DNA from: Selaginella moellendorffii
Lineage: Eukaryota > Plantae > Lycopodiophyta
NCBI RefSeq assembly: GCF_000143415.4
Contig: NW_003314338.1
Location: forward strand, 444,202 to 508,201
Direction: 5' to 3'
DNA: 64,000 nt
A program made the position numbers and the translations under genes. Under the pieces are notes generated by a model that searched no databases, was not told where the DNA came from, and saw nothing but the letters and a program-made list of their open reading frames with translations. Below are positions 1 through 19,937 of the stretch, one piece after another. How positions within the stretch are numbered: the first letter of the stretch is position 1; the number at the start of each line of letters is the position of its first letter.

Positions 1-125
1 AGATCACGGCATTGGCAGGACAATTTCTAGTTTATGTCCCCATATGCAAATATATAACAGCGTATTTCATGCTGTACATGGCATCAGTATATCTCATCCA
101 TGAACAAAAATCGATCAAAAATCGA

Positions 126-3100: not shown

Positions 3101-3624
3101 AGCGTAAGAAACTGCTCTCTGGACCTGGAGGAAAACGGGCACTTGATCGAAAACTACACGATTGTCGATCCATACCTTCTCATCTTGAAAAATTGGATAG
3201 TCACTAACATCCACTCCATCGAACACCAAGCTCGCTGCTGGCGATCAAGAACAATGTAAAGAAAAAGAAGAAGACGAGACCGCGCCTTACTTCCATCGTC
3301 AACTTTCCCGTTTCGTGGATCACTGCTCGCCTGTGGAAGAATGCATGCTCCATACGCCACGGCCGCCGTGACCGCAACTTGAGCAAAGGTCATGAGCGCC
3401 ACAGCATGAGCCGAGGCGGTCGGAGCCACAGTCCTGAAAGCAGTGCTCCCGGTCGCGAGCAGCTGCCCCACGGACGCCAGCGGCACCTGGCGGACGACAT
3501 GATCCAGCAGCAAGCTGCTGCGACAAACCGGAAGGAGAAATCGCCGCCGCTTCCTCCTCACTGTCGATCGATTCTTGCCGCCGCAATGCGCCCACAGCGC
3601 CACATTCCCGCAGGCGCAATCCAT
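126..3624 (-). CDS. RSH: RelA/SpoT homolog ((p)ppGpp synthetase/hydrolase), multi-exon, probable plastid transit peptide
   Basis: Spliced exons give HD-domain motifs (HAGQMRMTGDPYITHC, GILHDVVDDT, KLADRLHNMRT), synthetase motifs (GRLKSLYS, IYDARALRVVV, EFDDYILNPKPSGYQSLHT, EVQIRT, AESGNAAHWLYKE) and a C-terminal TGS-like domain (WPNGDIVRMPAGSTVSDAA...LRDGDVIEVR). Introns are short GT-AG. Start codon is approximate. Confidence 0.93.
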
Positions 3625-3984
3625 GCCGCCAGCGGCAGCAGCAGCATCGCACAGCTCGCGCGCTTCGTTTTAGCCCTAAATCCTCGCGGAAGAACAGCGA
3701 GTGATATTACGCCACTCCGCCATGGCCACCACCGCAAGAGGACAGAGCGCTAGATACCCGAAACGTGGCTCTTTCCAAAGTCTACACGTCTCACAATAAT
3801 ATCCTCTAGAATATTCCACACTTTGAAAATGTGAGTTGACCCCTTCAACACGGAGGGGGAAAGTTCTTTCCATCTCTTTCGATCGCCCAAAAAAAAACTC
3901 TCTTCACTTACTTCGCGGCACTACCTACACGATCGCATCGTGTTGGTCGATCAAACAAAAATATAGAAGAAGCAGCTAGAAAAC

Positions 3985-4395
3985 TCACGAGATTGCCTGG
4001 CGCCGCCCTTCCTTCTTCACCAAAACTCTGTCCCCCTCGCGAGCCACCGTGATCTTCTTATACACGAGCAAATCGTCCGAGTCCACGCTCAGAGCAGCGG
4101 CGCCGCTCGAGCTCAAGCTCCGCCCCTCCAGATTGTTTGCTGCTCCATCTCCATCACTCACTACCACGACTCTCATCTCGTAGTACGTATCCGTCCCAGC
4201 CATGTCCACCGGGACAAACTTGTCCGAGAAAGGGGCCACCGAGAGCCTGAGCCTGCCAAGCTGATCCCTGTATCGGTCCCGGAAAACCACCGTCGCCGGT
4301 GTCTGGTTGCAAATCCAAGTCACTCGCTGCAAATCCATGCTGCACGGCTGCGAGTCGGACGTCTTGATTCTGGAGAAGCATCCCAGCTTGAACAT
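3985..4395 (-). CDS. Small intronless protein of unknown function (136 aa)
   Basis: ATG-initiated GC-rich ORF with a TATA-like TTTATAAG ~40 nt upstream. The pattern TWICNQT...DTYYEMRV...LSVDSDDLLVYKKITV recalls, from memory only, a small beta-rich family of non-seed plants. Confidence 0.6.
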   Translation of the reverse strand: MFKLGCFSRIKTSDSQPCSMDLQRVTWICNQTPATVVFRDRYRDQLGRLRLSVAPFSDKFVPVDMAGTDTYYEMRVVVVSDGDGAANNLEGRSLSSSGAAALSVDSDDLLVYKKITVAREGDRVLVKKEGRRQAIS

Positions 4396-6187
4396 CTCCT
4401 CGCTCGAAGAACTGAGACCAACTGTATGGAGCTTATAAACTGCCGACCACCATCAGTTTAGTCGCCCTGTTCGGCCCGCCAGAGCTACAATCGGGCGGCT
4501 ATTGAGCTCCGTGCCGTACTCGGACAAGTATCCATTGCCGACCATTCTTTCTGTGAAACATCAAAATATAAGTCATCTCCCTGGAACGCTGAAAAAACGA
4601 GCTAGCTTCATTACCAGATAGCCGAGTTGAAGTTGAGGATCTTGGTGAGCGCAAAGTCGTCGAAAGGGAAATAAAAAAAAAGTCTCGCTGGAAAAGCCTA
4701 CATGTGGAGAGATCAACGAAGGTACACAGAAAGTAACAAGCTTAACTTGCTGCTGCACATGACTAAAGACAGTGGGCTCCTTCAATGCTGCCGCTTTTCA
4801 CACCCAACTTGAACAAACCACCCTTGTCTGCAAACCAAAAACAAAAAGACACTTGCATCAAACCAGAGAGAAGACTTGGTAGAGAAAGCACACCTCACTC
4901 ACAAGCTTAATCTAGGTAAGATGTTGCAGAGAGGACTCGTGCAATGCGCCTGAGCGAATAGGTGTGAGTGACAACGACGCTGCCTGCACCAACAACAGCG
5001 TATTAGTCAGAAAGAGGAAAAACAAGTGATGCTAAGAGTAAGATAAAGCCACTACCAAGAGCGCAACAAATGCAGCGCAGACGAAAGAGTTTTCGGCCTT
5101 ACTCAAACCGCTGAAGATGTTCTAGCGTCGCGACTTCTGAACGGAAAAATAGTTCGACGTATCATCAGTAGTACACTGGCGTTATACTTCCCCGTCAATT
5201 CGTCGAGAAAGACGTTCTTGCTCCCCTATGAAACAATCAGACACCACCACCATCAGTAAAAATTCCATACAGCACTACTGGCGAGCCATCCTCCAACAAA
5301 AACACACCAACGCTGCCAAACATCTCCCTCCCTATGAGAGGGAAGTAACAACCAAAGCAGAAAAAAGAGAGGCAGAAAACAAAGAAATCACAAACTATTA
5401 GAACCTGTCCCTGTCAAAAGCTCAGTAGCTTGCATTCATGCTGCACCTTCGGAGCCGCTGCAAGCCTTGTCTGCTTCATTTAACGATTGGAAAATGAAAA
5501 GCAGCTTGATGAAATATACAAACATTCATTACCTTCACAGCGACAGCAAGGCGGTGCTCATCCATCCTCAAGCTTCAAAGCTTTTGAATTCTCTGCATCC
5601 AAACAAGTTGAAACCACAGATTCATTACCAGAGAGAAAAGGTAAGAGAAAACAAACAAAAAAAAGAGGATAATACCTTGTTGTCAAAGAATTATTACTTC
5701 CAGAAGATCTGCACAGATCATCAAACATTAACGAGCTACGGACTAAGAAACATAGAAAAATCTCGCCTATACACCAATCATTTCAAAGTAAACATTTGGT
5801 GATTGCTTTCGCCGTTTGGAAACAAAAAAAAGAGTTTCGTAGCAAGTGACATAGTTTAGTACTTCTTCCCAATCTAGAGGAGGTAGAACCTCTAGAGGCC
5901 AGGAAAAAAAGGCCACTGTACTGCTAAATTTCGGAGGCCCCTTGGGAAACACACACGGCTTACCCAAGCAGAGGACCTTCAACCCCACTCAAACTTATTG
6001 TCATGAATCGCCTTCGTCTCGATCTTATCTAGAAGGTCTGGGAAGAAGAGTGAAAACCAAAGGAGAAAAGAAGATGAGAACTTAACAAGAGATTAACCTG
6101 AAGAAGCCGTGTCGAATGAATAAAGGGACCACCCTTCGTGTCCTCCTCCCGTCCCACTCCACAGTATTTACAAAACTTCGTGTGGAA

Positions 6188-7114
6188 CTATTCGCTCTTC
6201 CAAGCGTAGAGAAGCAACGAAAAACCAGCCGCCGAGACGTGTGAAGCAGCAGTAGCAGCATCCTGGGCTGCTGCTCCTGTTCCCGGCTGGACTCGCAAGC
6301 TCGACGAGCAAGCCATGGCGTCTTTCATCCACGGCCTCTCGGACGAGACGCACGTCTGGAACATAAACACGGCATTCCCCAGCGAGGGATTGAAGAGCCA
6401 ATTGTGCACGTCCCAAAACACCTCCACCGGCAAGCCGTCGACGAGGATGGTCTGGTTCCCCCTAAACTTCCACATAAGCTTCTTCACCTGGATCACCAGC
6501 TGCCTGTCCACCCTCACGTAAAGCCGCGGCTCCCGAGCTCCATTCGTGTGGCACTCGATCATAATGTCGTGAGTTCTTCCACTCTCGCCAAACTGCGCCT
6601 TGGTGGTGTAGTACCGCTTCCCAAAGACGTGCTCCCGCCGCGAGAGAAGCATAGCCTCGATCGTCGGTGGCCTCGCCTGCGTCTTCTTGTAAGCCTCCCT
6701 CACCATATCGCCCAGCAGCAATGCCACCTCTCCATCGGAAACGATGGCGAGGTAGAAACCATCTTGCGGCTCCGGCCCGCAGAGATACTTGGCCGAGGAG
6801 AGGTCCCAAAAGACCTCCACTTTCTGCCCATCCACCTCCATAGCCTTGGATCCCTGCTTCTTCCAGAAGAACCACGGCTTCATGTCTACCTTGCAAGTGT
6901 AGTGGCACGCTGGGTCGTCCACATTGACGCTCAGTCCCTGCCCCATGAGATTCTTGCACCATGTCACCGTGATCAAGCGGCAGTGGCCCCAGAGCTTGGT
7001 CTGATAGACGCAAGTCACCAGATTTTGCGTCATCCTGGCGCCCATGGACATGTCCGCGACCTGGACGCCGTATTCGCCGAAGCAAGAGGGGAATCCATCC
7101 GGCATTCTCAGCAT
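6188..7114 (-). CDS. DUF868 family plant protein, intronless
   Basis: FPSCFGEYGVQVAD, QNLVTCVYQ, ITVTWCKNLMGQGL, CKVDMKPWFFWKKQGSK, FWDLSSAKY..GPEP, WKFRGNQTILVDGLPVEVFWDVHNWLF and GFSLLLYAWK are typical of DUF868. First ATG taken at MLRMPD. Confidence 0.92.
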   Translation of the reverse strand: MLRMPDGFPSCFGEYGVQVADMSMGARMTQNLVTCVYQTKLWGHCRLITVTWCKNLMGQGLSVNVDDPACHYTCKVDMKPWFFWKKQGSKAMEVDGQKVEVFWDLSSAKYLCGPEPQDGFYLAIVSDGEVALLLGDMVREAYKKTQARPPTIEAMLLSRREHVFGKRYYTTKAQFGESGRTHDIMIECHTNGAREPRLYVRVDRQLVIQVKKLMWKFRGNQTILVDGLPVEVFWDVHNWLFNPSLGNAVFMFQTCVSSERPWMKDAMACSSSLRVQPGTGAAAQDAATAASHVSAAGFSLLLYAWKSE

Positions 7115-8339
7115 CGTCGCGGGAGCGCCGATAATCTTGGATGGATTCTGGCGATGTTCTTGCCGCAATGCCGCAGGAATCTTGGGGCTTGGATCCGAGA
7201 TCTTGCTGTCAGCCAAAAGCAAGGCAGCTCCGCTTGTCGTGGAAAGAGCGCCGCTCCTCCTGTTCCTGTTCCCCGAAATTCCTCATCCGGGAAAGATTCC
7301 AGGCCGCCGCCGCCGCCGCACAGATCTTCTGTCGCGGCGCTGGAGCTCGAGGAATCAAGAACGCCAAAACCCTAGGCCTAGAATATGAGCGGCAAGCGAT
7401 CGAAGTGACCTGGGAAGAATGGAGGCCTCCGCCAATGCGGCCGCGTCGCGATTCTTCCAGCGCCCCGGCACGAATTCGCCACGCCCTAGCTAGAGCGCGC
7501 AAAAGCAATAAATCCTCGAGCTTTTGGGAGCTAGAAAGAGCTCGCCCAAGCACTGACTGGTATCCCCCATTTTACACGGATAACGGAACTAGGTAGAGAA
7601 AAAGCTCGCCTTTAGCCAGAAACGCTACCTAGCGATCGTGCGTTCGAATCCAGTCCACTCAAAGGCGCCAAAGCCACACCGTTGGATCCACATACCATTC
7701 AAACCTCGGCCGTTGGATTTGGGATTGGTCAAATAGTAGTTTTCTCACGACTTTAAAAAACGGGAAGGTGGAGGTATAAAGAATGTCTGATACCGCGGCA
7801 TATTCTGTACCTAGCCACCTTGCACGACTATACATCATGCTCTGCGCAAATGCGCCAAATTACCATTAGATTTCGTGATGGTGATGCCTTACATCACAAA
7901 CCAAGCTAACCTAAAATAAATAGTTCCATGATCCATGATTGGTTATGCCTCCGTCAACTTTCCTAGAAACAAGCATGGTTGATATTTTCCACGTCAACTT
8001 CCTCGACTTACGTAACAAATGATCCAGGTTTGATACCTCGTGTCAATCTTTAGGGAAAAATTCTCCCGGCTTTTGGCATAGAAAAAAGAGAATGTAAAAA
8101 AAGTGACAAACCTCTTCATATACACTGTCCCACACCATCTTGTCAAACACCAAACTTTGGATTTTTTGCTTGTTTCTCCACGCCACGAAACATGAGAGAG
8201 ACAGGGAAGGCTGCAAATCTCTAGGAAATCATACTGTGCCTTGTTGATGCGTTAAGGTGGATTTCAAGTGATCGTAGCTGTTTACAACGATACATACCTT
8301 CTTTGTTAACATTTTCTTCGCTGGAGGTGGAGCCAAAGT

Positions 8340-9333
8340 CGAGATCCATCCATTGCAATGCGATTGTTAAAGAGCCTCTCTAAAATCTCCCAGATTGAGG
8401 CCGCGGACCTGACAATCGTGGCAATGTCACTCCTGACAAGTAGACCAGAAAGAAACAACAACAAACAAACCTGATCGTTTCCACCAGTGGACCAAGTTCG
8501 CAAATTGATATCATCGCACGAAGGTTGCTCCTAGAATGCCAAGCCGCTTCCCACACTTAGAAAGCAATATCTGGGGAAAAGAACAACGTTACAATCTGTG
8601 TCTTTCACGAGTCAGAGCCTGTCAAAACCGAAGGATTCAGCGAGAAAGAGAGGAAAGAAAAAAAAAAAGCAGAACTTTCCCACTTGACATGGATTGTCCT
8701 TTGAGAAGATTTTGTAGGAGTGACCTGCGGCCATCAGAGTCAGGTAGTGGACGCATATTCTCTTTCACCTGGAGAGGAAAAGCAAGAGGAGAACTTAAAA
8801 AAACGATCACGCGTTGGACTCACGAGACGCCTCCGTACTGGATCATCTATTTCCGCTGGCCTGTGAGTAGCACCTGTGACAAAAGAAATTCTCAGCTCAG
8901 TGGCAATGAATATCGCGCGCTTTACCCATCACAAAAAATTCGATCGTCCTTGATGGCTAAAAAATTTTCCGGTTTGAGCCTGCGGCCAGCATCATGTTCA
9001 TTCGAACAAAATGCTGCCTATCTGGAAACGATTCGAACTCGAAGTTTCATGTGGGAAGCCCAACCTGCGTAGCAACTAAGCATAAGCTCCACAGACTGAT
9101 AATAGAACAAATCTTACCCACTTTGAAGTGAACGACGAAGAAAGAATGCACTATAGGCCACTCAGATGCCACTGCCTTGGCCAGCAAGCCTGTTAAAGTG
9201 GGCGTCAGGCAAAAAGCAACGCGGGCTTTGTTTAAAACCTGGAGCTGGTGTGCGAAAATCCGTGAAAAGATCACTCCTTTTTGTAGGAAGAATAACCATC
9301 TCCATCAAAGCGTGCTTGAGTTTGCAAGTCCAG
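8340..9333 (-). pseudogene. Degenerate spastin/katanin-like AAA ATPase gene relic (intron-containing)
   Basis: Collinear exon fragments: AGLA/(frameshift)KHALMEMVILPTKRSDLFTDFRTPAPG, LLAKAVASE, NEHDAGRRLK, GATHRPAEIDDPVRRRL, VKENMRPLPDSDGRRSLLQNLLKGQ, AMISICELG, QVRGLNLGDFREAL*. Walker A (GPPGNGKT) and Walker B are not recognisable; frameshifts and stops are present. Confidence 0.78.
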
Positions 9334-9612
9334 CTGCAAGAAGTAGCAATGTTCACGCAAGAAAAAGAAAAAGGACAAACACTAAGAAACATACCAATGA
9401 TGGCCTGCCATAGACAATCTTACGTTTGATAGAAGTTGTCCGCCATTGGTACGACGATCACCACAGACGAGCTAGAAAGAACAGTTTGTGGCTGTAAAGT
9501 TCCAAGCTTCCAAAATCAAAAGATATAAAGAGAAATCACAAATACCGGTCGAACCTGAATAGTGATCAAATTCTCCAGCCAGAGCTTCGCATCGCTCCCA
9601 TTTTTCTAGGGC

Positions 9613-12042
9613 TCATATCAGTAGCGATCTCTTTGCCACTGAATCCGGCCAGAACGGCATGCTCTCGAGCAATTCCATTGCGAAATCCCTGCGCCCCGAC
9701 CTCGCAAGAGCGCCGAGAATGCAGCAGTAGTGCCGGATCGACGCCTGGAGCCCGAAATCCAGCGCCATTGACAAGAACTGGCGCCGGCTCTCCTCGATCG
9801 ACCGCGGCGATCCCAGCACCGCCAAGAACGTCCCCCTGTCCGGCGCAAACCCTAGCAAGACCATTGCGTGGAGGAGCTCGATCGCGTTGCCAAAAGAGGA
9901 GCTTGCCGCCACAATGTACGTGCTCCATGATACGTCATCACGCTCTGGCATCCAAGCGAATATCTTCCCGGCCTGTTCTAGACTCCCAGCCTGGGAATAT
10001 GCCACCATCAGCGCATTCCATGCCACAAGATTCCTCTCTGGCATGTTGTGAAAGGCTTCCCTGGTGGCATCAAGCTCCCAATTCTGGGCAAAAGATGCCA
10101 CCATTGTGGACCAAGATATGGTGTCCAGCCATGGAATATTATCAAACACTCTCTTTGCTTGACAAATATTCCCAGCTTTAGAATATGCCTGCAGCATTGC
10201 AGTGGAGCATATTACATTGTTTTTAATTGCCATTTTGTCATATACACATTGTGCCTCTTCAATGCTGCCTTTGGAGGAAAATGCTTGTAGAATGGATGAC
10301 ATTGAAGAGATAGTATATTCTGGCATTTGATTGCAAAGGTGTAGAGCTTCCTCTTCAAAATTATTGGAGATGAGTGCCACAATAATCATGGACCATGAGT
10401 GAATATCCCTCTCCCTCATGCTTTTGAATATGATCCTTGCTTCACGCATCTGCCAGGCTTGGGCATATGCTCCAATCATTAAGCTCCAAACTTTCAAATC
10501 ATGCTCTGGCATATTCTTAAAAATAGTTTTTGCTCCCTCCAAATTCCCAGCCCTGGCATATCCTTGCAACATTGCAGTGTATGTTATAATGTTTTTAACG
10601 GGAATGTCCTGGAATATGTTTTCTGCTTCAATCATATGCCCACATTGGGTATAAGCAGTGAGAAATGAGGTCCAAAACACCACATCTGGATATTCAACCT
10701 TCAGAAACAAATCCATTGATTCCTCAAATTTGCCATTTTTCACTAAGCTCTGAAGCATTATTTCTAAACCATGCCCATCCCAAAGAGGCATTTGGTGAAA
10801 AACTTTCTTTGCTAGATCTAAGTGCTCACATTGACAATAAACTTGTAGCAAAGCATTCCAAGTTCCCAAAGTATGGCAAGGCATCTCCAGAAAAACACAC
10901 TTTGCTGCTACCACGTCGCCCAGCTGAGAATATGCGCCAATAGCAGCGTTGCAAGAAAGAATATTCACCTCTGGAAGCCGCTTAAACATTCTAACAGCTC
11001 CCTCTGGATACCCATTCTGGGAATATCCAGCTATGCATGTAGTCCACGACACTATGCTCGTCAATGGCATCTGGGCAAAAAGATTCCGGGCATCCTCCAA
11101 CCATCTGCAGCATATATAACCTGCTAGCATAGAATTCCACGTAACCAAATTATGCCTAGGCATCTTACTATAGAGTTTCCAAGCTCCATCAAGATTCCCA
11201 TTTGAGGCAAGTGCATCAAGCATAATATTCCAGGACACAATATTCCTTTCGGGCATAGAATCGAATATTCTTTTGACTGAAACAGAATCATTGCTTTGAC
11301 TGTAAGCTGCGAGCATCACGTTGAACGACACTGTGTCTGGATGAGGAATCTTCTCAAACAAGGACTTGGCACTTTCAAGATGCCCGTTTTGGGCATATGC
11401 TTGTACCATAAGATTCCAAGATACAACGTTCTTGTGGGCAATACCATCAAACAATCCCTTTGCCTTTTCTAGAAATCCATTTTCCCCAAACGCTTGTATC
11501 AAAGCATTGCACGAAACTAGACTCTTCTCCGGGATTCTTTCAAAGTAAGACACGGCGTCCTCCAAATGCCCAGCTTTGGCGAGCCCTGTGACGATCGAAT
11601 TCCACGATACTTGATTCGCATCGGGCATTTCCTCGAAGATCTTCTTTGCGGCGTCGAGATCCCCGCTCTGGACGAACAAGCTGATCATGTTGTTCCATAG
11701 AACAGGAGGTTTCTCTGGAGCCATGTCAAAGAGGCTCTTCGCTGCGTCGAAATGACCGTTCTGGGCATAGGCCGAGATCATGGTGCTCCAGGAGAATGCG
11801 TTTGGCGGCTCCATCTTGTCGAAGATCGAGCGCGCGGATTCCACACAGCCGCACTTGCCATACATGTCGATGAGAAGGTTGAGGAGGAACCTGTCAGATC
11901 GGAGCTGGCTCTGCGACACCCAATCGTGAATTTGCCTGCCGGACAAGAGATCTCGATCAAACGCGCAGCCACGGATCACTTCCGCGAAATCCTCGACCCT
12001 GTGGAATTTATCAGCAGCGCCCGTGATCTGGATTGCATCCAT
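9613..12042 (-). CDS. PLS-class pentatricopeptide repeat protein (809 aa), no DYW domain
   Basis: Intronless ORF with tandem ~31-aa PPR motifs (FxxMPExNxVSWNxMxxAYAQNG) and an L2/S2-like end (HYCCILGALARSG...SMPFWPD). Confidence 0.93.
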   Translation of the reverse strand: MDAIQITGAADKFHRVEDFAEVIRGCAFDRDLLSGRQIHDWVSQSQLRSDRFLLNLLIDMYGKCGCVESARSIFDKMEPPNAFSWSTMISAYAQNGHFDAAKSLFDMAPEKPPVLWNNMISLFVQSGDLDAAKKIFEEMPDANQVSWNSIVTGLAKAGHLEDAVSYFERIPEKSLVSCNALIQAFGENGFLEKAKGLFDGIAHKNVVSWNLMVQAYAQNGHLESAKSLFEKIPHPDTVSFNVMLAAYSQSNDSVSVKRIFDSMPERNIVSWNIMLDALASNGNLDGAWKLYSKMPRHNLVTWNSMLAGYICCRWLEDARNLFAQMPLTSIVSWTTCIAGYSQNGYPEGAVRMFKRLPEVNILSCNAAIGAYSQLGDVVAAKCVFLEMPCHTLGTWNALLQVYCQCEHLDLAKKVFHQMPLWDGHGLEIMLQSLVKNGKFEESMDLFLKVEYPDVVFWTSFLTAYTQCGHMIEAENIFQDIPVKNIITYTAMLQGYARAGNLEGAKTIFKNMPEHDLKVWSLMIGAYAQAWQMREARIIFKSMRERDIHSWSMIIVALISNNFEEEALHLCNQMPEYTISSMSSILQAFSSKGSIEEAQCVYDKMAIKNNVICSTAMLQAYSKAGNICQAKRVFDNIPWLDTISWSTMVASFAQNWELDATREAFHNMPERNLVAWNALMVAYSQAGSLEQAGKIFAWMPERDDVSWSTYIVAASSSFGNAIELLHAMVLLGFAPDRGTFLAVLGSPRSIEESRRQFLSMALDFGLQASIRHYCCILGALARSGRRDFAMELLESMPFWPDSVAKRSLLI

Positions 12043-12054
12043 CGAGCCAAGCTC

Positions 12055-12339
12055 TCACGCGTGCTTGAAGAGCTTCATGCTGAGCCAGTGGAAGTAGACA
12101 GCCACGATCAAGACCGGGATCGTCATGGGAACCAGGAAGAAATAGTACCTGGGATCATCAAGAAACCCCAGATCTCGTCAAGAAACGATGAAGCGAAGGA
12201 CTTACCACTCTCCCCGGATGAAATCCAGAGGCTTTGGCCCCGACGATGGCAAGAGCTGCGCCAAGAACGCGAAGTAGACGATGGCGCCAAAGGAGCAAAC
12301 GCTGAGCGCTAGAAGAACAGCTCCGCCTTTCCCGCGCAT
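12055..12339 (-). CDS. PIG-Y: PIG-Y, GPI-GlcNAc transferase subunit Y (75 aa; exons 12339-12206 and 12148-12055)
   Basis: Splicing a 57-nt GTAAG..CAG intron (12149-12205) gives MRGKGGAVLLALSVCSFGAIVYFAFLAQLLPSSGPKPLDFIRGEWYYFFLVPMTIPVLIVAVYFHWLSMKLFKHA*. The C-terminal WYY..LVP.T.PV..VAVYFHWLSMKLFKHA is the PIG-Y signature. Absent from the ORF track. Confidence 0.9.
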
Positions 12340-12580
12340 TGCTTCTGCCCTAAAAGTTTGAACGAACTCACCCGGGTTAGCGTTAACCTAACCTGGAATC
12401 CCTTTAAAACGATGCCTGGATCTTCGGATCCTTTTTTAATATATGAGGAGGAGGAAGCCCGTGTGTCTCGAGGGCTCTTGTCCACGCGCACACCCCAGCG
12501 CGCTTCTTGGAAGGTACGATTCAATCCATCTTGGCGCTCGATCAATCTCCAGGGGAATCGATTCCAGTCCACGCCGCCAT
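12340..12580. promoter_or_regulatory. Short divergent (bidirectional) promoter between PIG-Y and the RING-H2 gene
   Basis: About 240 bp between oppositely oriented gene starts. Contains telo-box-like AACCTAACC/GCCCTAAA and a TATA-like TTTAATATAT. Confidence 0.45.
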
Positions 12581-12720
12581 GAATCGATCTGGTCGGTAAT
12601 CCGATTTCGCGAGATTTCGTGCTCGACTCACCCTGTTCTTGACAGCCGCGCAAGATTCTACCCGGAATGAGAGATCGATCGGCAAAGGTATGGAAATCTC
12701 TTCCAAGAAGCCTAATGTAG

Positions 12721-13710
12721 GAACCAGGGGCGTGTCCAGGTCGTCGGCGCAGAGCTGCCGCGGAGCAGCGGCGGATAGAACAGCAGCGATGGGGGCAATT
12801 CGACGAAGACAAGGACGAGGATGGAGCTACGGACTTGATCCTAGCGCCGGCGCCGAGGCGGCGTAGCAGGCGTCCCTCGCGGCGAGAGCTGCTACAGGAT
12901 GAGCTCCAACTGGCGAGGGATGAGCTCGAGATGGAGGCGCTGCGCTTGCGATACGGCGGATCTCACGAGCTCGATATTGCTCTAGGTAAGTTGTCGCAAC
13001 TCGCAAGGTACTTCTTTCCCTCTTCTTTGCTTGTTTGGTTTTTTTCTTTTCTTTGTTTGAGTGCCTTCTTTGCTTCCATTGATCAAAGTGGTTTGCCTTC
13101 CTTCATCTATTATGTTTTCCCTTCTCACGGTTCTTCTATTTGTTTTGAGAAAACTTCTCACGCTTCTCCTTGTTGGTTTGTCTTCCTTCATCTTTTTTCC
13201 TTTTCTCGAGAGAACTTCTCACGGTTTGAAGTGCAGCCTTGTCTCTCTCCTTGAGTGATGAACCGACTTACGCTCACGCGGAGGCTACTGCGGTTTCTTC
13301 ACTGGATATGTCGTATGAGGCAAGTAACTTCCCTTCTTTCTTTTCGCGTAGTTTTCTCGAGCCTGAGACTCACTCGTCTTCCACAGAGCCTCGTAGAACT
13401 CGAGAGCGTGAAGTGCGTGGCTTCTCCAGCTCTAGTGGCTTCCCTTGACCGGACCATCTTCTCAGATGGCGGCGGCGGCGGCTCCGCCGAGTAAGTCCCT
13501 CTGATCACTCTCCCTCCTCTGACTTGGGCTTTCTTTGTGGCTTTTCTATCCAGCTCTTGCGTCATCTGCCAGAACGAATACGTTGGCGGGGACAATCTCT
13601 CCCGCCTACCTTGCAAGCACGACGTTCACGAAGCTTGCGGCTCCGAGTGGCTGCTCAACTATTCAAAGCTCTGCCCCGTCTGCAAGGCGGACGTGACCAT
13701 GGAGCATTGA
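12721..13710 (+). CDS. RING-H2 zinc finger protein (putative E3 ubiquitin ligase), multi-exon; 5' end uncertain
   Basis: Spliced exons give ...LDMSYE|SLVELESVKC...GSA|DSCVICQNEYVGGDNLSRLPCKHDVHEACGSEWLLNYSKLCPVCKADVTMEH* (C3H2C3). A GC-AG intron at 13320-13386 is required. Candidate ATGs lie at ~12579 and 12667. Confidence 0.85.
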
Positions 13711-13888
13711 TCTTTGTACAGTTCCAGGTAAAACTTCATACTCGATCGATCGAAACTAAGAGAACTTCTTCCTTTCTTGTCCCGCAGATAGGTACATTAT
13801 TATTTCTCATTGATTCATCTAGCAACGATGAACAAGCTGTACATTCAACCTTGTAAAAAATGGTTCTTCTTTCTTGTATTTAACTTGT

Positions 13889-16024
13889 ATGTCAAGGCAG
13901 CGTGTCTTATCGTGGAACATCGCTATAGCAGGCCATGCCCGAAATGGTCAGGTGGAGCTCGCAAAGGCGGTGTTTGACGAGAGCCCCCAGCGCGACGTGT
14001 CTTCGTGGAACACACTCGCGCAGGCCTATCTCCACCGCCAGGACTTCTCCTCCGCGAAAAGAGCCTTCGATGGAATGCCTTCTCACGACGTTGTGTCGCT
14101 CAACACGATGGTTTGTGGGCACGTTCGGGCTGGATTGGTCCAACACGGTGAGGATCTCTTCCGCTGGATGGCGCAGAGGAGCAGCGTCTCATGGAAGAGT
14201 TTGTGCCAAGCATATGCCCAAACTGGGCATCTGGAGAGAGCTAAGAACTTGTTTGAGAAAATGCCACAGTTGGATCTTTTGTCATGCACAAGCCTCTTGA
14301 GTGTATTTGCCCAAACGTGTCAAGTGGAACAAGCAAAACTTATTTTTGATGTGATGTGTTTTAGAGATGTTCTGTGCTGGGTTGCCATGCTTGCAGCATA
14401 TGCCAAAGCTGGGTATATGCTAACTACTGAAGTGTGTTTTGCTTTGATGCCTTTCTGGGACAATGTGGCGTTCACTGTTATGGTGGCGACATATTCCCGT
14501 TGTGGACAGTTAACCAAAGCCTTGGATATCTTTCAGAAAATAGTCTCTCACGACGTTTATTCCTGGACTGCGCTGCTTTCGGCATATGCCTCAAACGGGC
14601 ATCTTGAGGAAGCGCAAGGAATCTTTTCCTTTATGCCGTGCCGCGGGCCTGTCGCGTGGAACTCGATGATTTCTTCGTTCTCGCAAATGGGAAACTTGGA
14701 AGTGACGAAGTTTTTGTTTGAAGAGATGCCTCAGCTGGACATTGTGGCGTGGGCGTCGCTGGTCATGGCCAGTACCGAGGCAGAACAAATGGGCTTGGCC
14801 CAAAACGTGTACGACCGGATGCCCCAGCACAATGCCGTGGTTTGTACGTCGCTTTTCCAGGCATATGCCCGCTATGGACATCTCAAAGAAGCCGAGAAAA
14901 TGTACCACGGAATGTTCTACAAAGATGCCCTCTCGAGTACAGTCTTGTTGAGTGCCTACATACGGAACAAAGAACCGGTTCTAGCGAAAGAGTTTTTTGA
15001 CAAGATGTGGAAGAGGGATCAGTTTTCGTGGAACATTTTGCTGTGCGGCTTTGTGCACTGCGGCTTGCTAGACAAGGCCGAGATTCTGCTGCACGAAAAG
15101 ATGCCAATGTACGGCATTGTGCCGATGAATGCCATTCTAGCCGGATATTCCCAGCTTGGGAATCTGGAGAAAGCTAAGATGCTCTTTGATGCTCTTCCTT
15201 GTGGCAATGTTGTCTCGTGGTCCATTCTCATTGCTTGCCATGCGCACAAAGGGGAATCTCTCCAAACAAAGCTCGTGTTTGGAAAGATGCCGCAGCTAAA
15301 CATGGTGGCTTGGAATGCCTTGGGATTCGTTAGTGGTTTGACGAAGCAGCTGGAAACAGCACGAGAAGTTTTCCATTCGATGCCGGGTCGTGATTTTCTC
15401 TCGTGGGCGAATTTTCTTACAACATCACTATCGAGTGGAGATCTTCCATCGGCAAAGCGGGTCTTTGAAAAGATCCCGATGCTGGACATGGTTCTTTGGA
15501 CGACTTTGGTTTTGGCTCATGCCCAAGCTGGGCATATTGGTGAAGCCAACACACTCTTTGCAAAGATGCCAGCCAGAGACTTGGTAGCCTGCAACGCCAT
15601 GCTTGGAATCTATGCCCAGAATGGGTATTGCAGCGAGGCAACTGGCCTCCTCCAAGAGATGACCCTGGAAGGTTTGAGCGCCGATGGAACGAGCTTCACG
15701 AGCTTGCTCAGTGGATTTGGCCACTCAGGATTGCTCAGCGATGGATTGAGCTGCTTGGCGAGCATGGCTAATGACTTTGGTCTTGTTCCAGATCCCCAAC
15801 ACTACAGCAGTGTGATTGATCTCGTTGCCAGGAGTGGAGAGGTGAAAGATGCAAAGGGAATGCTGGCATCGTTTGGCCTTGCAAGCGATGTTGCCTGGAG
15901 GAGCTTGCTCGCTGCTTGCCGCATTCAGCTGGATGAAGAGAGCGCCCTGGCAGCTGCTAGCTCCCAAGAACATCACAAGGAAAAGGCTCCCTATTCTTTG
16001 CTTGTAAACATTCTTGCAAGCTGA
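13889..16024 (+). CDS. PLS-class PPR protein (~710 aa), degenerate E extension, no DYW
   Basis: Intronless ORF of tandem PPR motifs ending HYSSVIDLVARSG...AWRSLLAACRIQ...PYSLLVNILAS. The first ATG (13889) leads directly into a PPR motif. Confidence 0.9.
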   Translation: MSRQRVLSWNIAIAGHARNGQVELAKAVFDESPQRDVSSWNTLAQAYLHRQDFSSAKRAFDGMPSHDVVSLNTMVCGHVRAGLVQHGEDLFRWMAQRSSVSWKSLCQAYAQTGHLERAKNLFEKMPQLDLLSCTSLLSVFAQTCQVEQAKLIFDVMCFRDVLCWVAMLAAYAKAGYMLTTEVCFALMPFWDNVAFTVMVATYSRCGQLTKALDIFQKIVSHDVYSWTALLSAYASNGHLEEAQGIFSFMPCRGPVAWNSMISSFSQMGNLEVTKFLFEEMPQLDIVAWASLVMASTEAEQMGLAQNVYDRMPQHNAVVCTSLFQAYARYGHLKEAEKMYHGMFYKDALSSTVLLSAYIRNKEPVLAKEFFDKMWKRDQFSWNILLCGFVHCGLLDKAEILLHEKMPMYGIVPMNAILAGYSQLGNLEKAKMLFDALPCGNVVSWSILIACHAHKGESLQTKLVFGKMPQLNMVAWNALGFVSGLTKQLETAREVFHSMPGRDFLSWANFLTTSLSSGDLPSAKRVFEKIPMLDMVLWTTLVLAHAQAGHIGEANTLFAKMPARDLVACNAMLGIYAQNGYCSEATGLLQEMTLEGLSADGTSFTSLLSGFGHSGLLSDGLSCLASMANDFGLVPDPQHYSSVIDLVARSGEVKDAKGMLASFGLASDVAWRSLLAACRIQLDEESALAAASSQEHHKEKAPYSLLVNILAS

Positions 16025-16554
16025 TAGCTTCATTTACACAAGTGAGAAAGTGAGTGAAGAGGTGAAAATTAAGTGGTTTTATGCCCCTAGAGTCTAGGTG
16101 GGTGTTGAAAAAACATACACTGTAAAATCTAAAGCTCTAAGTAGTTTTTTAGAATACCACAAAAACAAGTCCTTGATTTTGGTTGACCCTCCAAAGCCTT
16201 CACACAAGTTCCAGAAATTATGTGTGTCATATTGAGAGGAATTAGGATGCTCATAGGTGGAAAATGTACTGACACTTCCCCAAACTTCTGACTCAACTGA
16301 CTGAAGGGCAGGGTCCATGTCCCCACTTGCAAAATGTAGCTTTCCCCACCTCAGGCGCTCACAGGAATCTCTCCTCTCATTTACTGATTCCCAAATTATG
16401 TTGTGGCCATTGAGTGTGTTGATTTCTTTCTTTGCTTTCCCCTGCTTTTCCTTCCACCCACAGATCTATATAGAAATCCTTTCTCCTCTATCACTTGCTT
16501 GATCTGGAAAATAGATCTGATGCTCTGACCTTTCAAAGCTTCCCCCTGCTCCCC

Positions 16555-16917
16555 TCATGATCCCTGAATTGCAGACTGGATTGTGAACTGACACCATAGC
16601 AGAAACAGCACCAGTGCAATGAGCCCTCCAACCAAGAGTGAAGACTGTGAAATCCCTGGATTTGATGGGCTGAGCTTTGAGCCAGAGGGAGAGGGAGAGG
16701 AGGAGGAAGAGCTGAGGAAATGGAGGAGGAAGAGCAGGAGAACTGGGAGCAAAAAGAGTGGCTTGAGTGACATCTCTGATGATTTCTCCTCCTCCTCTTC
16801 CTCCTCTGCTCCCTCTAATGTAAGATACCATGGGATAATCAGGATTCCCAGCACCAGCACAAGAATGAGCAATGGAACCAGTGGGGATGGAGAGGAGGCA
16901 TCTGCAGCTGTTGCCAT
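16555..16917 (-). CDS. Small plant transmembrane protein (120 aa, three hydrophobic segments)
   Basis: ATG-initiated ORF: TM (LVPLLILVLVLGILIIPWY), acidic linker, TM (LFLLPVLLLFLLHFLS), Ser/Pro linker, TM (LLVGGLIALVLFLLWCQ). This layout matches a known family of small plant membrane proteins. Confidence 0.75.
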   Translation of the reverse strand: MATAADASSPSPLVPLLILVLVLGILIIPWYLTLEGAEEEEEEEKSSEMSLKPLFLLPVLLLFLLHFLSSSSSSPSPSGSKLSPSNPGISQSSLLVGGLIALVLFLLWCQFTIQSAIQGS

Positions 16918-17354
16918 TTTCGAAAATGGGAGAAAAGAAAATAGAGAAAAAAGATAAAAGGGAATGAAAAGAGGCAGCTGCTGTTGTAGGTAGATGGAAT
17001 TGAAGCTGTTTGTATTTACTTTCTCTTTTGTATTTCTGGTCTGGTTCTTCCTTGTGGAGGTCCTTTGCAGCCCAGTAAAAATGCTTTAAAATTCTACACA
17101 CTCACATGTAAGATGGTGTCAAGCTCTTGCTTGAGCCCGCCTGCATGTTTCCTTTGATTTGCTCTCCCTCCTGTAACTTTTTTCTTCTTTTTATCCTCCT
17201 TGATTTTGTTGGTAGAGTCTAAAAAGGAAGCAGAGCGCGTTTTCTCTTCCGTCCTACTCCATAAACATCAACGTCGTCTTGTCCCAAACAGATGCCTTTT
17301 TGGTGCATTTTCTTTTTTCTTTAGAGAAAAGAAGTCTTGTTTTTTCCTTTGATT

Positions 17355-19937
17355 TTAGTGACTACTTGATAGTGAATTTGCTAGAAGGGCCAGGGCTCCA
17401 GCTCTCTTTCCATCCAGCCTAGCGAGCACATTGGTTCCTTTGATTAGAGTTTTAGGAGCCGCTCCCAGTAAACATGTCCACTCCAAGGAATCTGGCTCGA
17501 ATGGCATGTTCTCGATTAGATCTCTCGCAGCTTCATAAGAGGCTGCTCTTCCCACTAAATCGACCATGCAAGAGTAGTGCTGCTTCAAAGCCACAAATCC
17601 GTAGCTTTCAACCAGCATGAAAAAATTCTTCCTTCCATTTTCAAGATCTCCCAAGCGACTGCACGCAATAAGAACTGATACAAAACACGTCTGGTCGGTC
17701 ACGTCCAAGATTTTCGCTTCCTCAAATAAAGCAAAAGCTTCAAGGTAGTGGCGGTTTTGGGCATATGCAGCAAGCATCGTGTTCCAGGTAACAATGTCTT
17801 TCTCAGGCATTTTATCGAAAAACGCTTTTGCAAGAGCTATATCCCCAGCTTGGGCATATGCAGCAAGCATGGCATTCCATGTTACTACAGTTTTCTCACC
17901 GCACATAGTGTGGAACATCCCAAAGGCAGTTTGTAGGTCTTCACAGGCTAGAATCTCATTGAAAGAAATAGAATCTTGCTGTGGCATGGAGTTGAATACA
18001 ACCTTGGCTTGCTCGATATGCCCAGTTTGGACATATCCACAAAGCATAGAATTCCAAGAAGATAAACCTCTATGCGGCATTTGCTCAAACATTGCCTTTG
18101 CGTCTTCAATGCGATTGTTCATTGCATAGGCACTTAACATTGCATTCCAAGACACGATATCGTGAACTGGCATTGAATCAAACAAGAGTTTTGCCGATTC
18201 AAGCTGACCTGTTCTTGAGTAGCCTGTGATCATAGTTGTCCAGGCTACAAGGTCTGTCTCTGGAATTTGGTCAAAAATGCTCTTTGCTTCCTCCATCTCT
18301 CCTTCTTGGGCATATGCTCCTATCATGGTAGTCCAAACACAAAGGTCCTTAGTGGGCATAGCATCAAATATGATTCCAGCATTTTGAAAGTCACCTTTCT
18401 TAGAATAAGCCCATATAAGTATTGCCCATGAAACTAAATTCCATTGTGGCATTGTATCAAAGATATTGGAGGTTTTCTCAAAGTTTTTCCCTTGTGAGAA
18501 GGCCATTAGCATTGCATTGTAAGAGCTCAAGTCCTTCTCTAGCATTCTAAGAAACAAAAACTCACATTCTAGATAATACCCATGTCGGGCATATGCTAAG
18601 AGCATTGTATTTGCAGATAAAAGGTCCCACTCTGGCATTGTGTTAAAAATGTGTCTTGCATAATCAAAATCATTTGCTTGATTATAGCATGACAGCAAAC
18701 ACGTCCACGAAACTAAGTCATATTGGGGCATATCCTCAAATAAACGACGAGCTTCATCAATATATCCCATTTGGGCATATGCTTTCAACAAGGTGGTATA
18801 AGACGTCATATCCTTCCAATGTAAATCCTCAAAAATCTTCTTGGCCTCGTCAAAATTTTGATTAGAAGCATAAAAGGCAAGCATGGCATTCCATGAGATA
18901 ATAGAATGCTCTGGTAGTTCACAGAGCATTCGCTTGGCCTGCAACGTATCACCTTCGCTTACATAAGCAGAAAAAAGAGTGACCCATGACACACAATCAT
19001 GAGTTGGAATCGAGTCTACAAGTTTTTCTGCCTTTTCAATATGTCCAGTTTCAATAAATACAGAGAGCAGAAGTGTAGAAGAAACTAAGTCGATCTGTGG
19101 CATATTCACGTATATGCTCTCAGCAAAGGATACATTTTCGTCTTGGCAGTACCCTTCCAGAATTGTGTTCCAAGATACAAAATCTTGATACCGCATTGTG
19201 TCAAAGAAATTTCTGGCCTCTTGCATTTGCCCGGATTTGGTAAATGCTCGTAAAACGATGTTGCTTGATATCAAGTCAAACACAGGCATTTTGTTGTAGA
19301 GGGCTTCTTTTTCCGGTACTTTTTCAGAATTGTAAGCCGAAAGTATCAACGTCCAAGAAACTAAGTCGTGAACCGGCATCCTCTCAAACAGAAATTTGGC
19401 ATTTACTAGATGCCCATCACGGGCATATACAGAAAGCATGGAGTTCCAGCTCACAAGGTTTCGTTCGGTCATTTCGTTGAACACTAGCTCTGCCTCCTGT
19501 ACCTCGCCATGTTTTGCATACAGTGTGAGAAGTATATTGTGGCAGACAACGTCCCACATTGGCATACGAGCAAAGATTCTCTTAGATTCGCTGATATGCC
19601 CATGCCGGGCATATGCCTCGAGCAGCACTGTCCACGAGACAATGCCGGGTTGTGGAATCTCCTCAAAGAGAAGCCTCGCATTTCTAAGATCGTCATTTTT
19701 GCAGTAAGCTAGGAGGATGGCGTGCCAGGAAAAGGAATCTTTCGATCTCAGGGAATCAAAGACGGCTCGTGCGTGGCTAGGCGAGCCGCAGTGGCCGTAC
19801 GCTTGAATCAGCTTGTTGGCAGCGAAGAGATTGTGTGGAAGAAGCGATTTGATCCGCTCGTGAATCTCTCTCGCATCAACCAGAGTTTTGCAGCGCTCGA
19901 TCTGGGCGAACAAATCCCGGTGAGAACTTGGAGCCAT
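17355..19937 (-). CDS. PLS-class PPR protein (~860 aa), no DYW
   Basis: Intronless tandem PPR motifs. First ATG at MAPSSHRDLF (19937); ends HYSCMVDLVGRA...MPFEPDSLEWTCLLGA. Confidence 0.93.
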   Translation of the reverse strand: MAPSSHRDLFAQIERCKTLVDAREIHERIKSLLPHNLFAANKLIQAYGHCGSPSHARAVFDSLRSKDSFSWHAILLAYCKNDDLRNARLLFEEIPQPGIVSWTVLLEAYARHGHISESKRIFARMPMWDVVCHNILLTLYAKHGEVQEAELVFNEMTERNLVSWNSMLSVYARDGHLVNAKFLFERMPVHDLVSWTLILSAYNSEKVPEKEALYNKMPVFDLISSNIVLRAFTKSGQMQEARNFFDTMRYQDFVSWNTILEGYCQDENVSFAESIYVNMPQIDLVSSTLLLSVFIETGHIEKAEKLVDSIPTHDCVSWVTLFSAYVSEGDTLQAKRMLCELPEHSIISWNAMLAFYASNQNFDEAKKIFEDLHWKDMTSYTTLLKAYAQMGYIDEARRLFEDMPQYDLVSWTCLLSCYNQANDFDYARHIFNTMPEWDLLSANTMLLAYARHGYYLECEFLFLRMLEKDLSSYNAMLMAFSQGKNFEKTSNIFDTMPQWNLVSWAILIWAYSKKGDFQNAGIIFDAMPTKDLCVWTTMIGAYAQEGEMEEAKSIFDQIPETDLVAWTTMITGYSRTGQLESAKLLFDSMPVHDIVSWNAMLSAYAMNNRIEDAKAMFEQMPHRGLSSWNSMLCGYVQTGHIEQAKVVFNSMPQQDSISFNEILACEDLQTAFGMFHTMCGEKTVVTWNAMLAAYAQAGDIALAKAFFDKMPEKDIVTWNTMLAAYAQNRHYLEAFALFEEAKILDVTDQTCFVSVLIACSRLGDLENGRKNFFMLVESYGFVALKQHYSCMVDLVGRAASYEAARDLIENMPFEPDSLEWTCLLGAAPKTLIKGTNVLARLDGKRAGALALLANSLSSSH

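Follow-up and report, generated by a model that had tools for sequence, protein, structure and literature searches.

In Selaginella moellendorffii, a two-exon PIG-Y gene and the intronless PPR gene that starts 12 nt behind it are transcribed together or on overlapping RNAs. This conclusion is well supported, as the junction between the two open reading frames (ORFs) is crossed by contigs from four runs, each belonging to a different study, and contig depth stays flat along the pair. The preliminary description had placed a PIG-Y TGA (12057-12055), 12 nt and then a PPR ATG (12042) in the same frame, leaving no space for a terminator or promoter, and had proposed a common transcript; the minus-strand read and the RNA contigs bear it out on these points. 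We tentatively propose, with confidence just short of even, that the locus yields a nuclear bicistronic mRNA encoding PIG-Y and then the PPR protein, the latter translated via leaky scanning.

Organization of the PIG-Y/PPR locus

The features of the locus, which lies in a 64,000-nt window (the whole stretch of DNA analyzed), are collected in the table. The PIG-Y ORF starts at the ATG at 12339 and comprises 75 codons (44 whole, one split and 30). Since 12 is divisible by 3, its stop codon is also the in-frame upstream boundary of the PPR ORF. The common frame carries no weight alone, being a 1-in-3 chance event; what is unusual is that two real genes of the same strand lie 12 nt apart.

Table. 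Features of the PIG-Y/PPR locus and the divergent RING/PPR2 unit (window coordinates)
Feature	Position	Strand	Basis
PIG-Y exon 1 (M1 to first two bases of W45), first transmembrane helix	12206..12339	-	sequence read, hydropathy peak
PIG-Y intron, 57 nt, GT..AG	12149..12205	-	joint 12145/12203 (cut +3) in X1, X2, X4
PIG-Y exon 2, second transmembrane helix, in-frame AUGs at 12126 and 12078, TGA	12055..12148	-	PF15159
Inter-ORF spacer GAGCTTGGCTCG, 12 nt	12043..12054	-	sequence read; indels reported there in no run
Intronless PPR ORF, 809 aa	9613..12042	-	annotated product in GCA_000143415.2
PPR stop to first downstream splice donor, 58 nt	9555..9612	-	contig joints
Tail introns	9554-9492, 9394-9334, 9238-9190, 9117-9065, 8925-8874, 8823-8769	-	contig joints
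Tail exons	9491-9395, 9333-9239, 9189-9118, 9064-8926, 8873-8824, then from 8768	-	contig joints
5' leader of PIG-Y/PPR transcript, AUG-free	12340..12390	-	X4 record 19 to 12367 plus 23 unaligned letters
Putative shared core promoter between divergent PIG-Y and RING units	12432..12445	.	A/T-rich, TATA-like
RING-finger gene, 214 aa, annotated, PF13639	12579..13710	+	joints, sequence
Intron past RING stop, linking RING terminal coding exon to PPR2 exon	13728..13787	+	joint 13724/13785 (cut +3), all four runs
PPR2, 711 aa, 118 spliced nt past RING stop; upstream AUGs at 13828 and 13861	13889..16024	+	sequence

The PIG-Y exons were searched one by one, each by reference, and the 75-residue length is the sum of the two. 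Exon 2 alone matched Pfam PF15159 with 43.3 bits (cut-off, 25 bits; E = 6.8e-11) over profile positions 41-69 of 69, and a PDB sequence search with it was blank. Exon 1, the poorly conserved half, gave no Pfam match and no candidates in the word search, the latter result being uninformative because of length limits and missing annotation. Hydropathy analysis gave a single peak per exon, corresponding to two hydrophobic helices in 75 residues. Members of the PIG-Y family have approximately 70-80 residues and two hydrophobic helices that form a V-shaped hairpin (PMC12182360). The product is predicted to be a two-helix endoplasmic reticulum (ER) membrane subunit of the GPI-GlcNAc transferase. The gene, which is absent from the S. 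moellendorffii annotation and is now added, probably encodes an essential ER microprotein.

RNA continuity and splicing

The PIG-Y intron is spliced out in runs X1, X2 and X4, which stem from three studies; their contigs skip 57 nt bounded by CT..AC on the plus strand. Record 19 of X4 (3122 nt) covers 12367-12203, then 12145-9555 and then 343 nt of downstream exons, and record 9 of X13 spans the junction as well (10862-12149). Across the X2 contigs, depth equals 8.47 over PIG-Y and the PPR 5' end, 7.42 and 8.78 further on, and 8.79 over the PPR 3' end and tail. The runs represent RNA in practice, because they contain canonical spliced joints on both strands. Moreover, the contigs were built from 31-letter words, which, with a 12-nt spacer, makes non-overlapping separate mRNAs impossible. 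Contigs are not molecules: overlapping transcripts get merged, start, end and strand information is lost, and record 3 of X1 joins RNAs of opposite strands. Because spliced RNA assemblies traverse both ORFs, PIG-Y and PPR most likely reside on one mRNA, which would be a single molecule bearing both, an arrangement that is rare in land plants.

Two candidate splicing events were rejected. The chimeric joints 10044/11378 and 10870/11373 have non-canonical ends with foreign letters between them, and are read as paralogue PPR contigs. An alternative acceptor joining PIG-Y exon 1 to PPR would, at the AGs of the spacer, either run into a stop or leave the PPR frame, and such a joint is unlisted.

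Transcription continues past the PPR stop codon. Record 19 of X4 and record 11 of X2 extend from the PPR exon into tail exons, of which at least three are joined in the 3.1-kb contig and six via another contig. A frame check of 8769..9554 revealed broken frames and no long ORF, and Pfam searches with four tail-exon translations were blank. A kinase-like 'LKPENFL' fragment, noted by eye in one tail exon frame, is unsupported, the frames being broken. With six introns downstream of the PPR stop, the PIG-Y/PPR RNA should be a target of nonsense-mediated decay.

On the plus strand, a RING-finger gene and a second PPR gene (PPR2) form a mirror unit that diverges from PIG-Y/PPR out of one short, putative promoter region. 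The ends of the X4 contigs, at approximately 12367 (plus 23 unaligned letters) and 12481, flank the TATA-like element, and record 5 of X1 extends from RING into PPR2. Both this RING-to-PPR unit and the splicing beyond the PPR stop (at least six exons) had been missed in the preliminary description.

Translation of the PPR reading frame

In the proposed bicistronic mRNA, the short promoter region in common with the divergent RING gene would drive transcription, which would begin approximately 50-60 nt before the PIG-Y ATG. After removal of the 57-nt PIG-Y intron, the RNA would be unbroken through the 12-nt spacer and the 2.4-kb PPR ORF; a 63-nt intron starting 58 nt past the PPR stop would be spliced, and the RNA would continue through short, ORF-poor exons. 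PIG-Y would be translated from the first AUG, while ribosomes bypassing this codon could reach the AUG at 12042 and produce PPR. Some of them may, before re-initiating at PPR, translate a 7-codon in-frame mini-ORF from M69.

The start contexts and the junction were inspected for signals of such translation. The PIG-Y AUG, with G at -3 and C at +4, is in a moderately good context, and that of PPR (U at -3, G at +4) is not superior to it. Two in-frame AUGs lie between the two starts and no out-of-frame AUG precedes 12042 (P = 0.45 under codon shuffling), so that AUG depletion is not significant (3 seen versus 3.85 expected). Leaky-scanning signatures are thus not significant at this locus. Of 200 shuffled sequences, 190 fold more stably than the junction (z = +1.6), indicating that no IRES-like or stimulatory hairpin is present there, and no TURBS-like UGGGA motif was seen by eye 5' of the restart AUG. 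Translation of PPR from the PIG-Y mRNA, and leaky scanning as its route, are inferred.

The alternative that survives best, which we consider somewhat unlikely, involves overlapping but separate mRNAs. PPR would be made mainly from a shorter transcript starting within the PIG-Y gene (exon 1, intron or exon 2), and the long RNA would serve PIG-Y only or be a by-product. Contigs would hide such starts by merging overlapping RNAs, and the absence of AUG depletion fits this alternative. The mirror unit points the same way: for the RING-to-PPR2 unit, leaky scanning is precluded by the 214-codon length of ORF1 and by the upstream AUGs, so PPR2 needs an internal start and the PPRs of the cluster may therefore generally use such starts. 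In Arabidopsis, the second genes of read-through transcripts mostly have their own transcription start site, and it is uncommon for the read-through RNA to serve for translation of their ORFs (PMC9768141). However, the X2 depths of 8.47 and 8.78 argue against a large pool of PPR-only RNA, the sequence read revealed no TATA-like element within the PIG-Y gene, and transcription beginning between 12078 and 12042 would give PPR a leader shorter than 36 nt.

A second alternative, which we judge quite improbable, regards the PPR ORF as a passenger: an old retrocopy in the PIG-Y 3' untranslated region (UTR) without useful translation, such that the locus would in functional terms be PIG-Y followed by a spliced and very long 3' UTR. 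The genes of the PPR family lack introns and have spread by retroposition, and the tail exons, too, resemble decayed sequence. In addition, this PPR ORF terminates approximately 15 residues into an E1-like motif. The C-terminal E1/E2 and DYW deaminase domains typical of PLS-class PPR RNA-editing factors (PF20431, PF20430 and PF14432), which many homologues have, are absent from it at E <= 1, and the first 40 residues (8 D/E, 5 K/R and 2 S/T) are acidic, unlike a transit peptide. With the acidic N terminus and the missing E/DYW domains, the 'organellar' RNA-binding protein of the preliminary description is not supported in that form. However, PPRs nearby and paralogues of the same subfamily have comparably short N termini and tails.

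The PPR ORF scores 419 bits against PF01535 with 19 repeats, and its motifs are spaced by multiples of 31 residues, in arrays of 31-residue S-type repeats. Its best relatives are At4g02750-like proteins. The coding state of the ORF argues further against a passenger. The nearest paralogue is just 36% identical, and this top match leaves no orthologue usable for cross-species comparison. Because 809 codons are still open at such a distance, PPR is an old gene. Indels are reported in neither allele across the 2430 nt of coding sequence, and 9- and 10-nt indels occur within 60 nt past the stop. The 34 visible allelic changes comprise 14 synonymous and 20 non-synonymous ones, giving a dN/dS of approximately 0.38 (binomial P = 0.007) as measured between alleles approximately 1-3% apart in one species. 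The start lies some 17 residues ahead of the first PPR motif, where S. moellendorffii paralogues also start in the alignment. From its sequence, PPR looks like a live, intact and constrained gene.

Finally, stop-codon read-through could generate an ER-anchored PIG-Y-PPR fusion, given the same frame and just the TGA and four sense codons between the ORFs. The PIG-Y TGA is followed by G, which makes an efficient termination context; it fits none of the plant read-through motifs known to us, and a stimulatory structure is absent downstream. As PPR also has its own ATG at a family-typical position, and the chance proportion of one-third for a common frame is likewise found among green-algal bicistrons (PMC7896298), this fusion is extremely improbable.

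Comparison with known two-protein messages

Two-protein nuclear mRNAs are common in green algae; in land plants, to our knowledge, very few are proven, CDC26-TTM3 being the usual example. No description of PIG-Y/PPR or of nuclear PPR bicistrons in Selaginella was found in the literature. If the bicistronic reading holds, PIG-Y/PPR would be a simple test system, in which the PIG-Y AUG is mutated and PPR is read out. The locus also indicates that PPR genes in the compact S. moellendorffii genome can be without intergenic promoter space, which bears on the annotation and expression of the family. A broader proposal, which we regard as distinctly unlikely, is that PPR genes of this species are regularly expressed from the second position of a message headed by a small housekeeping gene (the candidates here being PIG-Y and RING). 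Green-alga-style polycistronic translation would then persist in a vascular plant and aid the promoterless spread of a very large PPR family.

In the human PYURF-PIGY message, PIGY is the downstream ORF and its partner PreY is unrelated to PPR, whereas PIG-Y is upstream here. The parallel that the preliminary description had drawn therefore stands insofar as PIG-Y is again found on a two-ORF message, the human mRNA being listed as bicistronic in PMC13303939, and falls short in the partner and in the order of the ORFs. It is only an analogy, suggesting a theme that recurs among very small ER subunits and not a conserved linkage.

Arabidopsis read-through transcripts arise by intergenic splicing past the stop codon, with PPR genes as frequent participants (PMC9768141). 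Similarly, the PPR tail and the RING-to-PPR2 intron are spliced past stop codons. In the Arabidopsis loci the distance between genes is normal and the genes are expressed on their own as well, in contrast to the 12-nt gap between PIG-Y and PPR.

The Arabidopsis CDC26-TTM3 message (Lorenzo-Orts et al. 2019, cited by PMC11892635 and PMC9768141) is a target of nonsense-mediated decay, and translation of its ORF2 aids expression of ORF1. It resembles PIG-Y/PPR as a message of a land plant in which a larger ORF2 follows a small, essential ORF1 to which it is unrelated. However, CDC26-TTM3 is another gene pair, and its conservation spans algae and angiosperms; PIG-Y/PPR has been seen in one species.

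A close layout is that of the chlorophyte bicistrons (TOM22, OST4 and REX1S_REX1B), which have been proven by Iso-Seq, proteomics and mutagenesis (PMC7896298, PMC11892635). Leaky scanning accounts for translation in green-algal bicistrons whose ORF1 encodes a small membrane protein and whose inter-ORFs measure 14 nt (PMC11892635, PMC7896298). PIG-Y/PPR shares with the chlorophyte loci a small ORF1, which in many cases encodes a tiny membrane protein, and a very short inter-ORF distance (12 nt, compared with 14 nt in REX1S_REX1B). Another probable common trait, as judged here from contigs, is that both ORFs lie on one spliced Pol II transcript without an IRES-like structure. The chlorophyte loci combine a weak ORF1 Kozak context with AUG depletion, neither of which is significant at PIG-Y/PPR. 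Our locus also differs in having a 2.4-kb PPR as ORF2, a lycophyte host and a translation step that we infer. If this reading is true, the lycophyte PIG-Y/PPR pair would carry the green-algal bicistron layout into vascular plants.

Layout of the PIG-Y/PPR pair

PIG-Y, a two-exon gene for a GPI-GlcNAc transferase subunit, directly precedes a PPR ORF on the minus strand of the Selaginella moellendorffii window. According to the preliminary description, the PIG-Y stop lies 12 nt before, and in frame with, the PPR ATG, and the minus-strand read bears this out. Since the spacer keeps the frame, the PIG-Y TGA forms the upstream in-frame bound of the PPR ORF. The two PIG-Y exons were searched one at a time. 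Exon 2 alone matches Pfam family PF15159 (PIG-Y) with 43.3 bits (cut-off, 25), and exon 1 searched alone has no Pfam match. Hydropathy places a clear hydrophobic helix in each exon, in agreement with the hairpin of two helices reported for PIGY (PMC12182360). PIG-Y is missing from the genes annotated on scaffold GL377642.1 (GCA_000143415.2).

Coordinates of the PIG-Y/PPR pair, its spliced tail and neighboring genes; tail introns are given after 'cut' shifts of the contig joints
Feature	Position	Strand	Remarks
PIG-Y exon 1	ATG 12339	minus	44 codons and first two bases of Trp codon
PIG-Y intron	12205-12149	minus	57 nt, GT..AG
PIG-Y exon 2	12148-12055	minus	finishes Trp, then 30 codons; TGA 12057-12055
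Inter-ORF spacer	12054-12043	minus	12 bases
PPR ORF	ATG 12042 to 9613	minus	809 codons, uninterrupted
Tail intron	9554-9492	minus	GT..AG, contig joint
Tail intron	9394-9334	minus	GT..AG, contig joint
Tail intron	9238-9190	minus	GT..AG, contig joint
Tail intron	9117-9065	minus	GT..AG, contig joint
Tail intron	8925-8874	minus	GT..AG, contig joint
Tail intron	8823-8769	minus	GT..AG, contig joint
TATA-like A/T element	12432-12445		between divergent PIG-Y and RING start codons; sequence
RING gene	start 12579, stop 13710	plus	214 aa; annotated, PF13639
Post-stop RING intron	13728-13787	plus	contig joint, four runs
PPR2	ATG 13889; mirror unit to 16024	plus	711 aa
PPR3	ATG 19937	minus	860 aa; Pfam PPR match
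PPR4	ATG 19962	plus	501 aa; Pfam PPR match

RNA across both ORFs

RNA data comprised Logan contigs from four runs of four studies (X1, X2, X4, and X13), aligned to window positions 8400 to 13900. The runs are labelled only 'RNA?' and were treated as RNA because of their many canonical joints on both strands. The contigs, built from 31-letter words, carry no start, end, or strand information. Contigs of X1, X2, and X4 skip the PIG-Y intron. In X4, record 19 (3,122 nt) covers 12367 to 12203 and, past the skipped intron, stays collinear from 12145 to 9555, a stretch that takes in PIG-Y exon 2, the spacer, and all of the PPR ORF. It then continues with 343 nt of downstream spliced exons. X13 represents a second allele (~1 to 3% divergent), of which record 9 (10862-12149) crosses the PIG-Y/PPR junction. 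In X2, mean depth is flat over four contigs, at 8.47 (PIG-Y exon 1 to the PPR 5' end), 7.42, 8.78, and 8.79 (PPR 3' end and tail).

Given 31-letter words and a 12-nt spacer, two non-overlapping mRNAs are ruled out; at minimum, one RNA holds part of the other gene. That PIG-Y and PPR share or overlap transcripts is well supported. The proposed bicistronic transcript thus stands as far as shared or overlapping RNA is concerned, with contigs crossing the junction and skipping the intron. Its single-molecule status is something we infer, as contigs do merge overlapping transcripts: X1 record 3 combines a minus-strand spliced intron with plus-strand spliced introns. The predominant mRNA probably holds both ORFs.

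The PPR ORF and the spliced tail downstream

The 809-aa PPR is identical to an annotated product of scaffold GL377642.1 (GCA_000143415.2), and matches PF01535 with 419 bits across 19 repeats of 31-residue period (S-type arrays). Its initiator Met, ~17 residues ahead of the first motif, aligns with those of S. moellendorffii paralogues and the neighboring PPR3, indicating a family-typical start with no upstream exon missing. The protein ends ~15 residues into an E1-like motif; E and DYW domains are absent in the Pfam search, so that it cannot act alone as a deaminase. The earlier label 'organellar' is an assumption rather than a finding. The N-terminus is acidic, with 8 D/E versus 5 K/R among its first 40 residues.

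The GC content of the ORF is 55 to 60% at both ends and 39 to 45% in the middle. Joints 10044/11378 and 10870/11373 have non-canonical ends with foreign letters between them, and many loose ends occur at 11397-11401 and 11754-11796; rather than splicing, the joints and loose ends are read as paralogous PPR mRNA contigs sharing repeat words. In GenBank, the gene range of the product (window 9613-18326) begins 6.3 kb upstream of its ATG, within PPR3, and spans genes on the opposite strand. A possible acceptor AG lies at 12368-12367, immediately 5' of which X4 record 19 has 23 letters that do not align. A 5' exon located far upstream, or else an artefact of the annotation, could explain this.

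Missed in the preliminary description, a splice donor lies 58 nt past the PPR stop, and the transcript continues downstream. The tail exons contain no long frame (best, start 9411, ~76 codons), and their translations match no Pfam family. Parts of the tail (8469-8611 and 8695-8750) also occur in a paralogue elsewhere whose expression is far higher (depth up to 157) and which has 34 other letters in place of window positions 8612-8694 (83 nt). On these sequence grounds, we take the tail to be the remains of a decayed gene, serving as a spliced 3' region. With six exon junctions past the last long ORF, the RNA should be prone to nonsense-mediated decay. An annotated DUF868 gene (308 aa; 6188-7114, minus strand) lies downstream of the tail, with nothing annotated between it and PPR.

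Possible routes of PPR translation and known bicistrons

Three AUGs precede 12042 in the leader and PIG-Y exons (12339; 12126, M53; 12078, M69), all in the PIG-Y frame. The lack of out-of-frame AUGs there is unremarkable by shuffling (3 AUGs versus 3.85 expected; P[no out-of-frame AUG] = 0.45). At positions -3 and +4, respectively, the PIG-Y start codon is flanked by G and C, and that of PPR by U and G; the stronger ORF2 than ORF1 start context of algal bicistrons (PMC11892635) is missing here. The junction is less stably folded than 190 of 200 shuffles, so it holds neither an IRES-like nor a stimulatory structure and presents no obstacle to scanning. The most economical route to PPR would be leaky scanning past the PIG-Y AUG, which the sequence is compatible with but does not demonstrate; it may involve re-initiation by ribosomes that have translated the 7-codon mini-ORF at M69. 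Translation of PPR from the two-ORF mRNA is, tentatively, the best single explanation.

Less probably, an internal start site supplies the PPR mRNA. The start codons of PIG-Y and the divergent RING-finger gene are 240 nt apart, and X4 contigs of the two sides end flanking the TATA-like element, at ~12390 and 12481. On the RING side, the post-stop intron joins the terminal coding exon to the PPR2 exon, with contigs across the joint in all four runs. With a long ORF1 and two AUGs (13828 and 13861) upstream of the PPR2 start, this mirror unit cannot use leaky scanning, which raises the odds of internal start sites for PPRs in the cluster. In addition, the divergent PPR3 and PPR4 start codons are only 24 nt apart, so each 5' leader must sit within the other gene.

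It is improbable that PPR is an untranslated passenger. The closest of 1,619 matches, mostly At4g02750-like proteins, is only 36% identical; without a close paralogue the gene must be old, and its 809 codons are nonetheless still open. No indels are reported in its CDS in any run, versus 9- and 10-nt indels ≤60 nt past the stop (contig table). Displayed allelic differences in the CDS (14/34 synonymous, 20/34 non-synonymous) give a dN/dS of ~0.38 (site ratio, 1:3.7; binomial P = 0.007; displayed differences only, n = 34). Fifteen displayed sites are bunched within ~240 nt (10117-10357), which may be gene conversion from a paralogue.

The PIG-Y TGA precedes a G and carries none of the known read-through motifs. 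Stop-codon read-through to a PIG-Y-PPR fusion is very improbable, the shared frame being a 1-in-3 event, the proportion seen in algae (PMC7896298).

Neither this PIG-Y/PPR locus nor any nuclear PPR bicistron of Selaginella turned up in full-text literature searches; the layout class is already known. At the human PYURF-PIGY locus, PIGY is the downstream ORF. In this known bicistron (PMC13303939), the partner of PIGY is unrelated to PPR. Arabidopsis CDC26-TTM3 and read-through transcripts are likewise of a known kind, and 'intergenic splicing' there eliminates poly(A) sites and favors read-through (PMC9768141). The first tail intron, U-rich and retained in X13 (record 6), recalls this process and may be a parallel. 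Chlorophyte polycistrons are also known (PMC7896298, PMC11892635), among them REX1S_REX1B, with a 14-nt inter-ORF; PIG-Y/PPR is similar in layout, with a 12-nt inter-ORF and a small membrane-protein ORF1.
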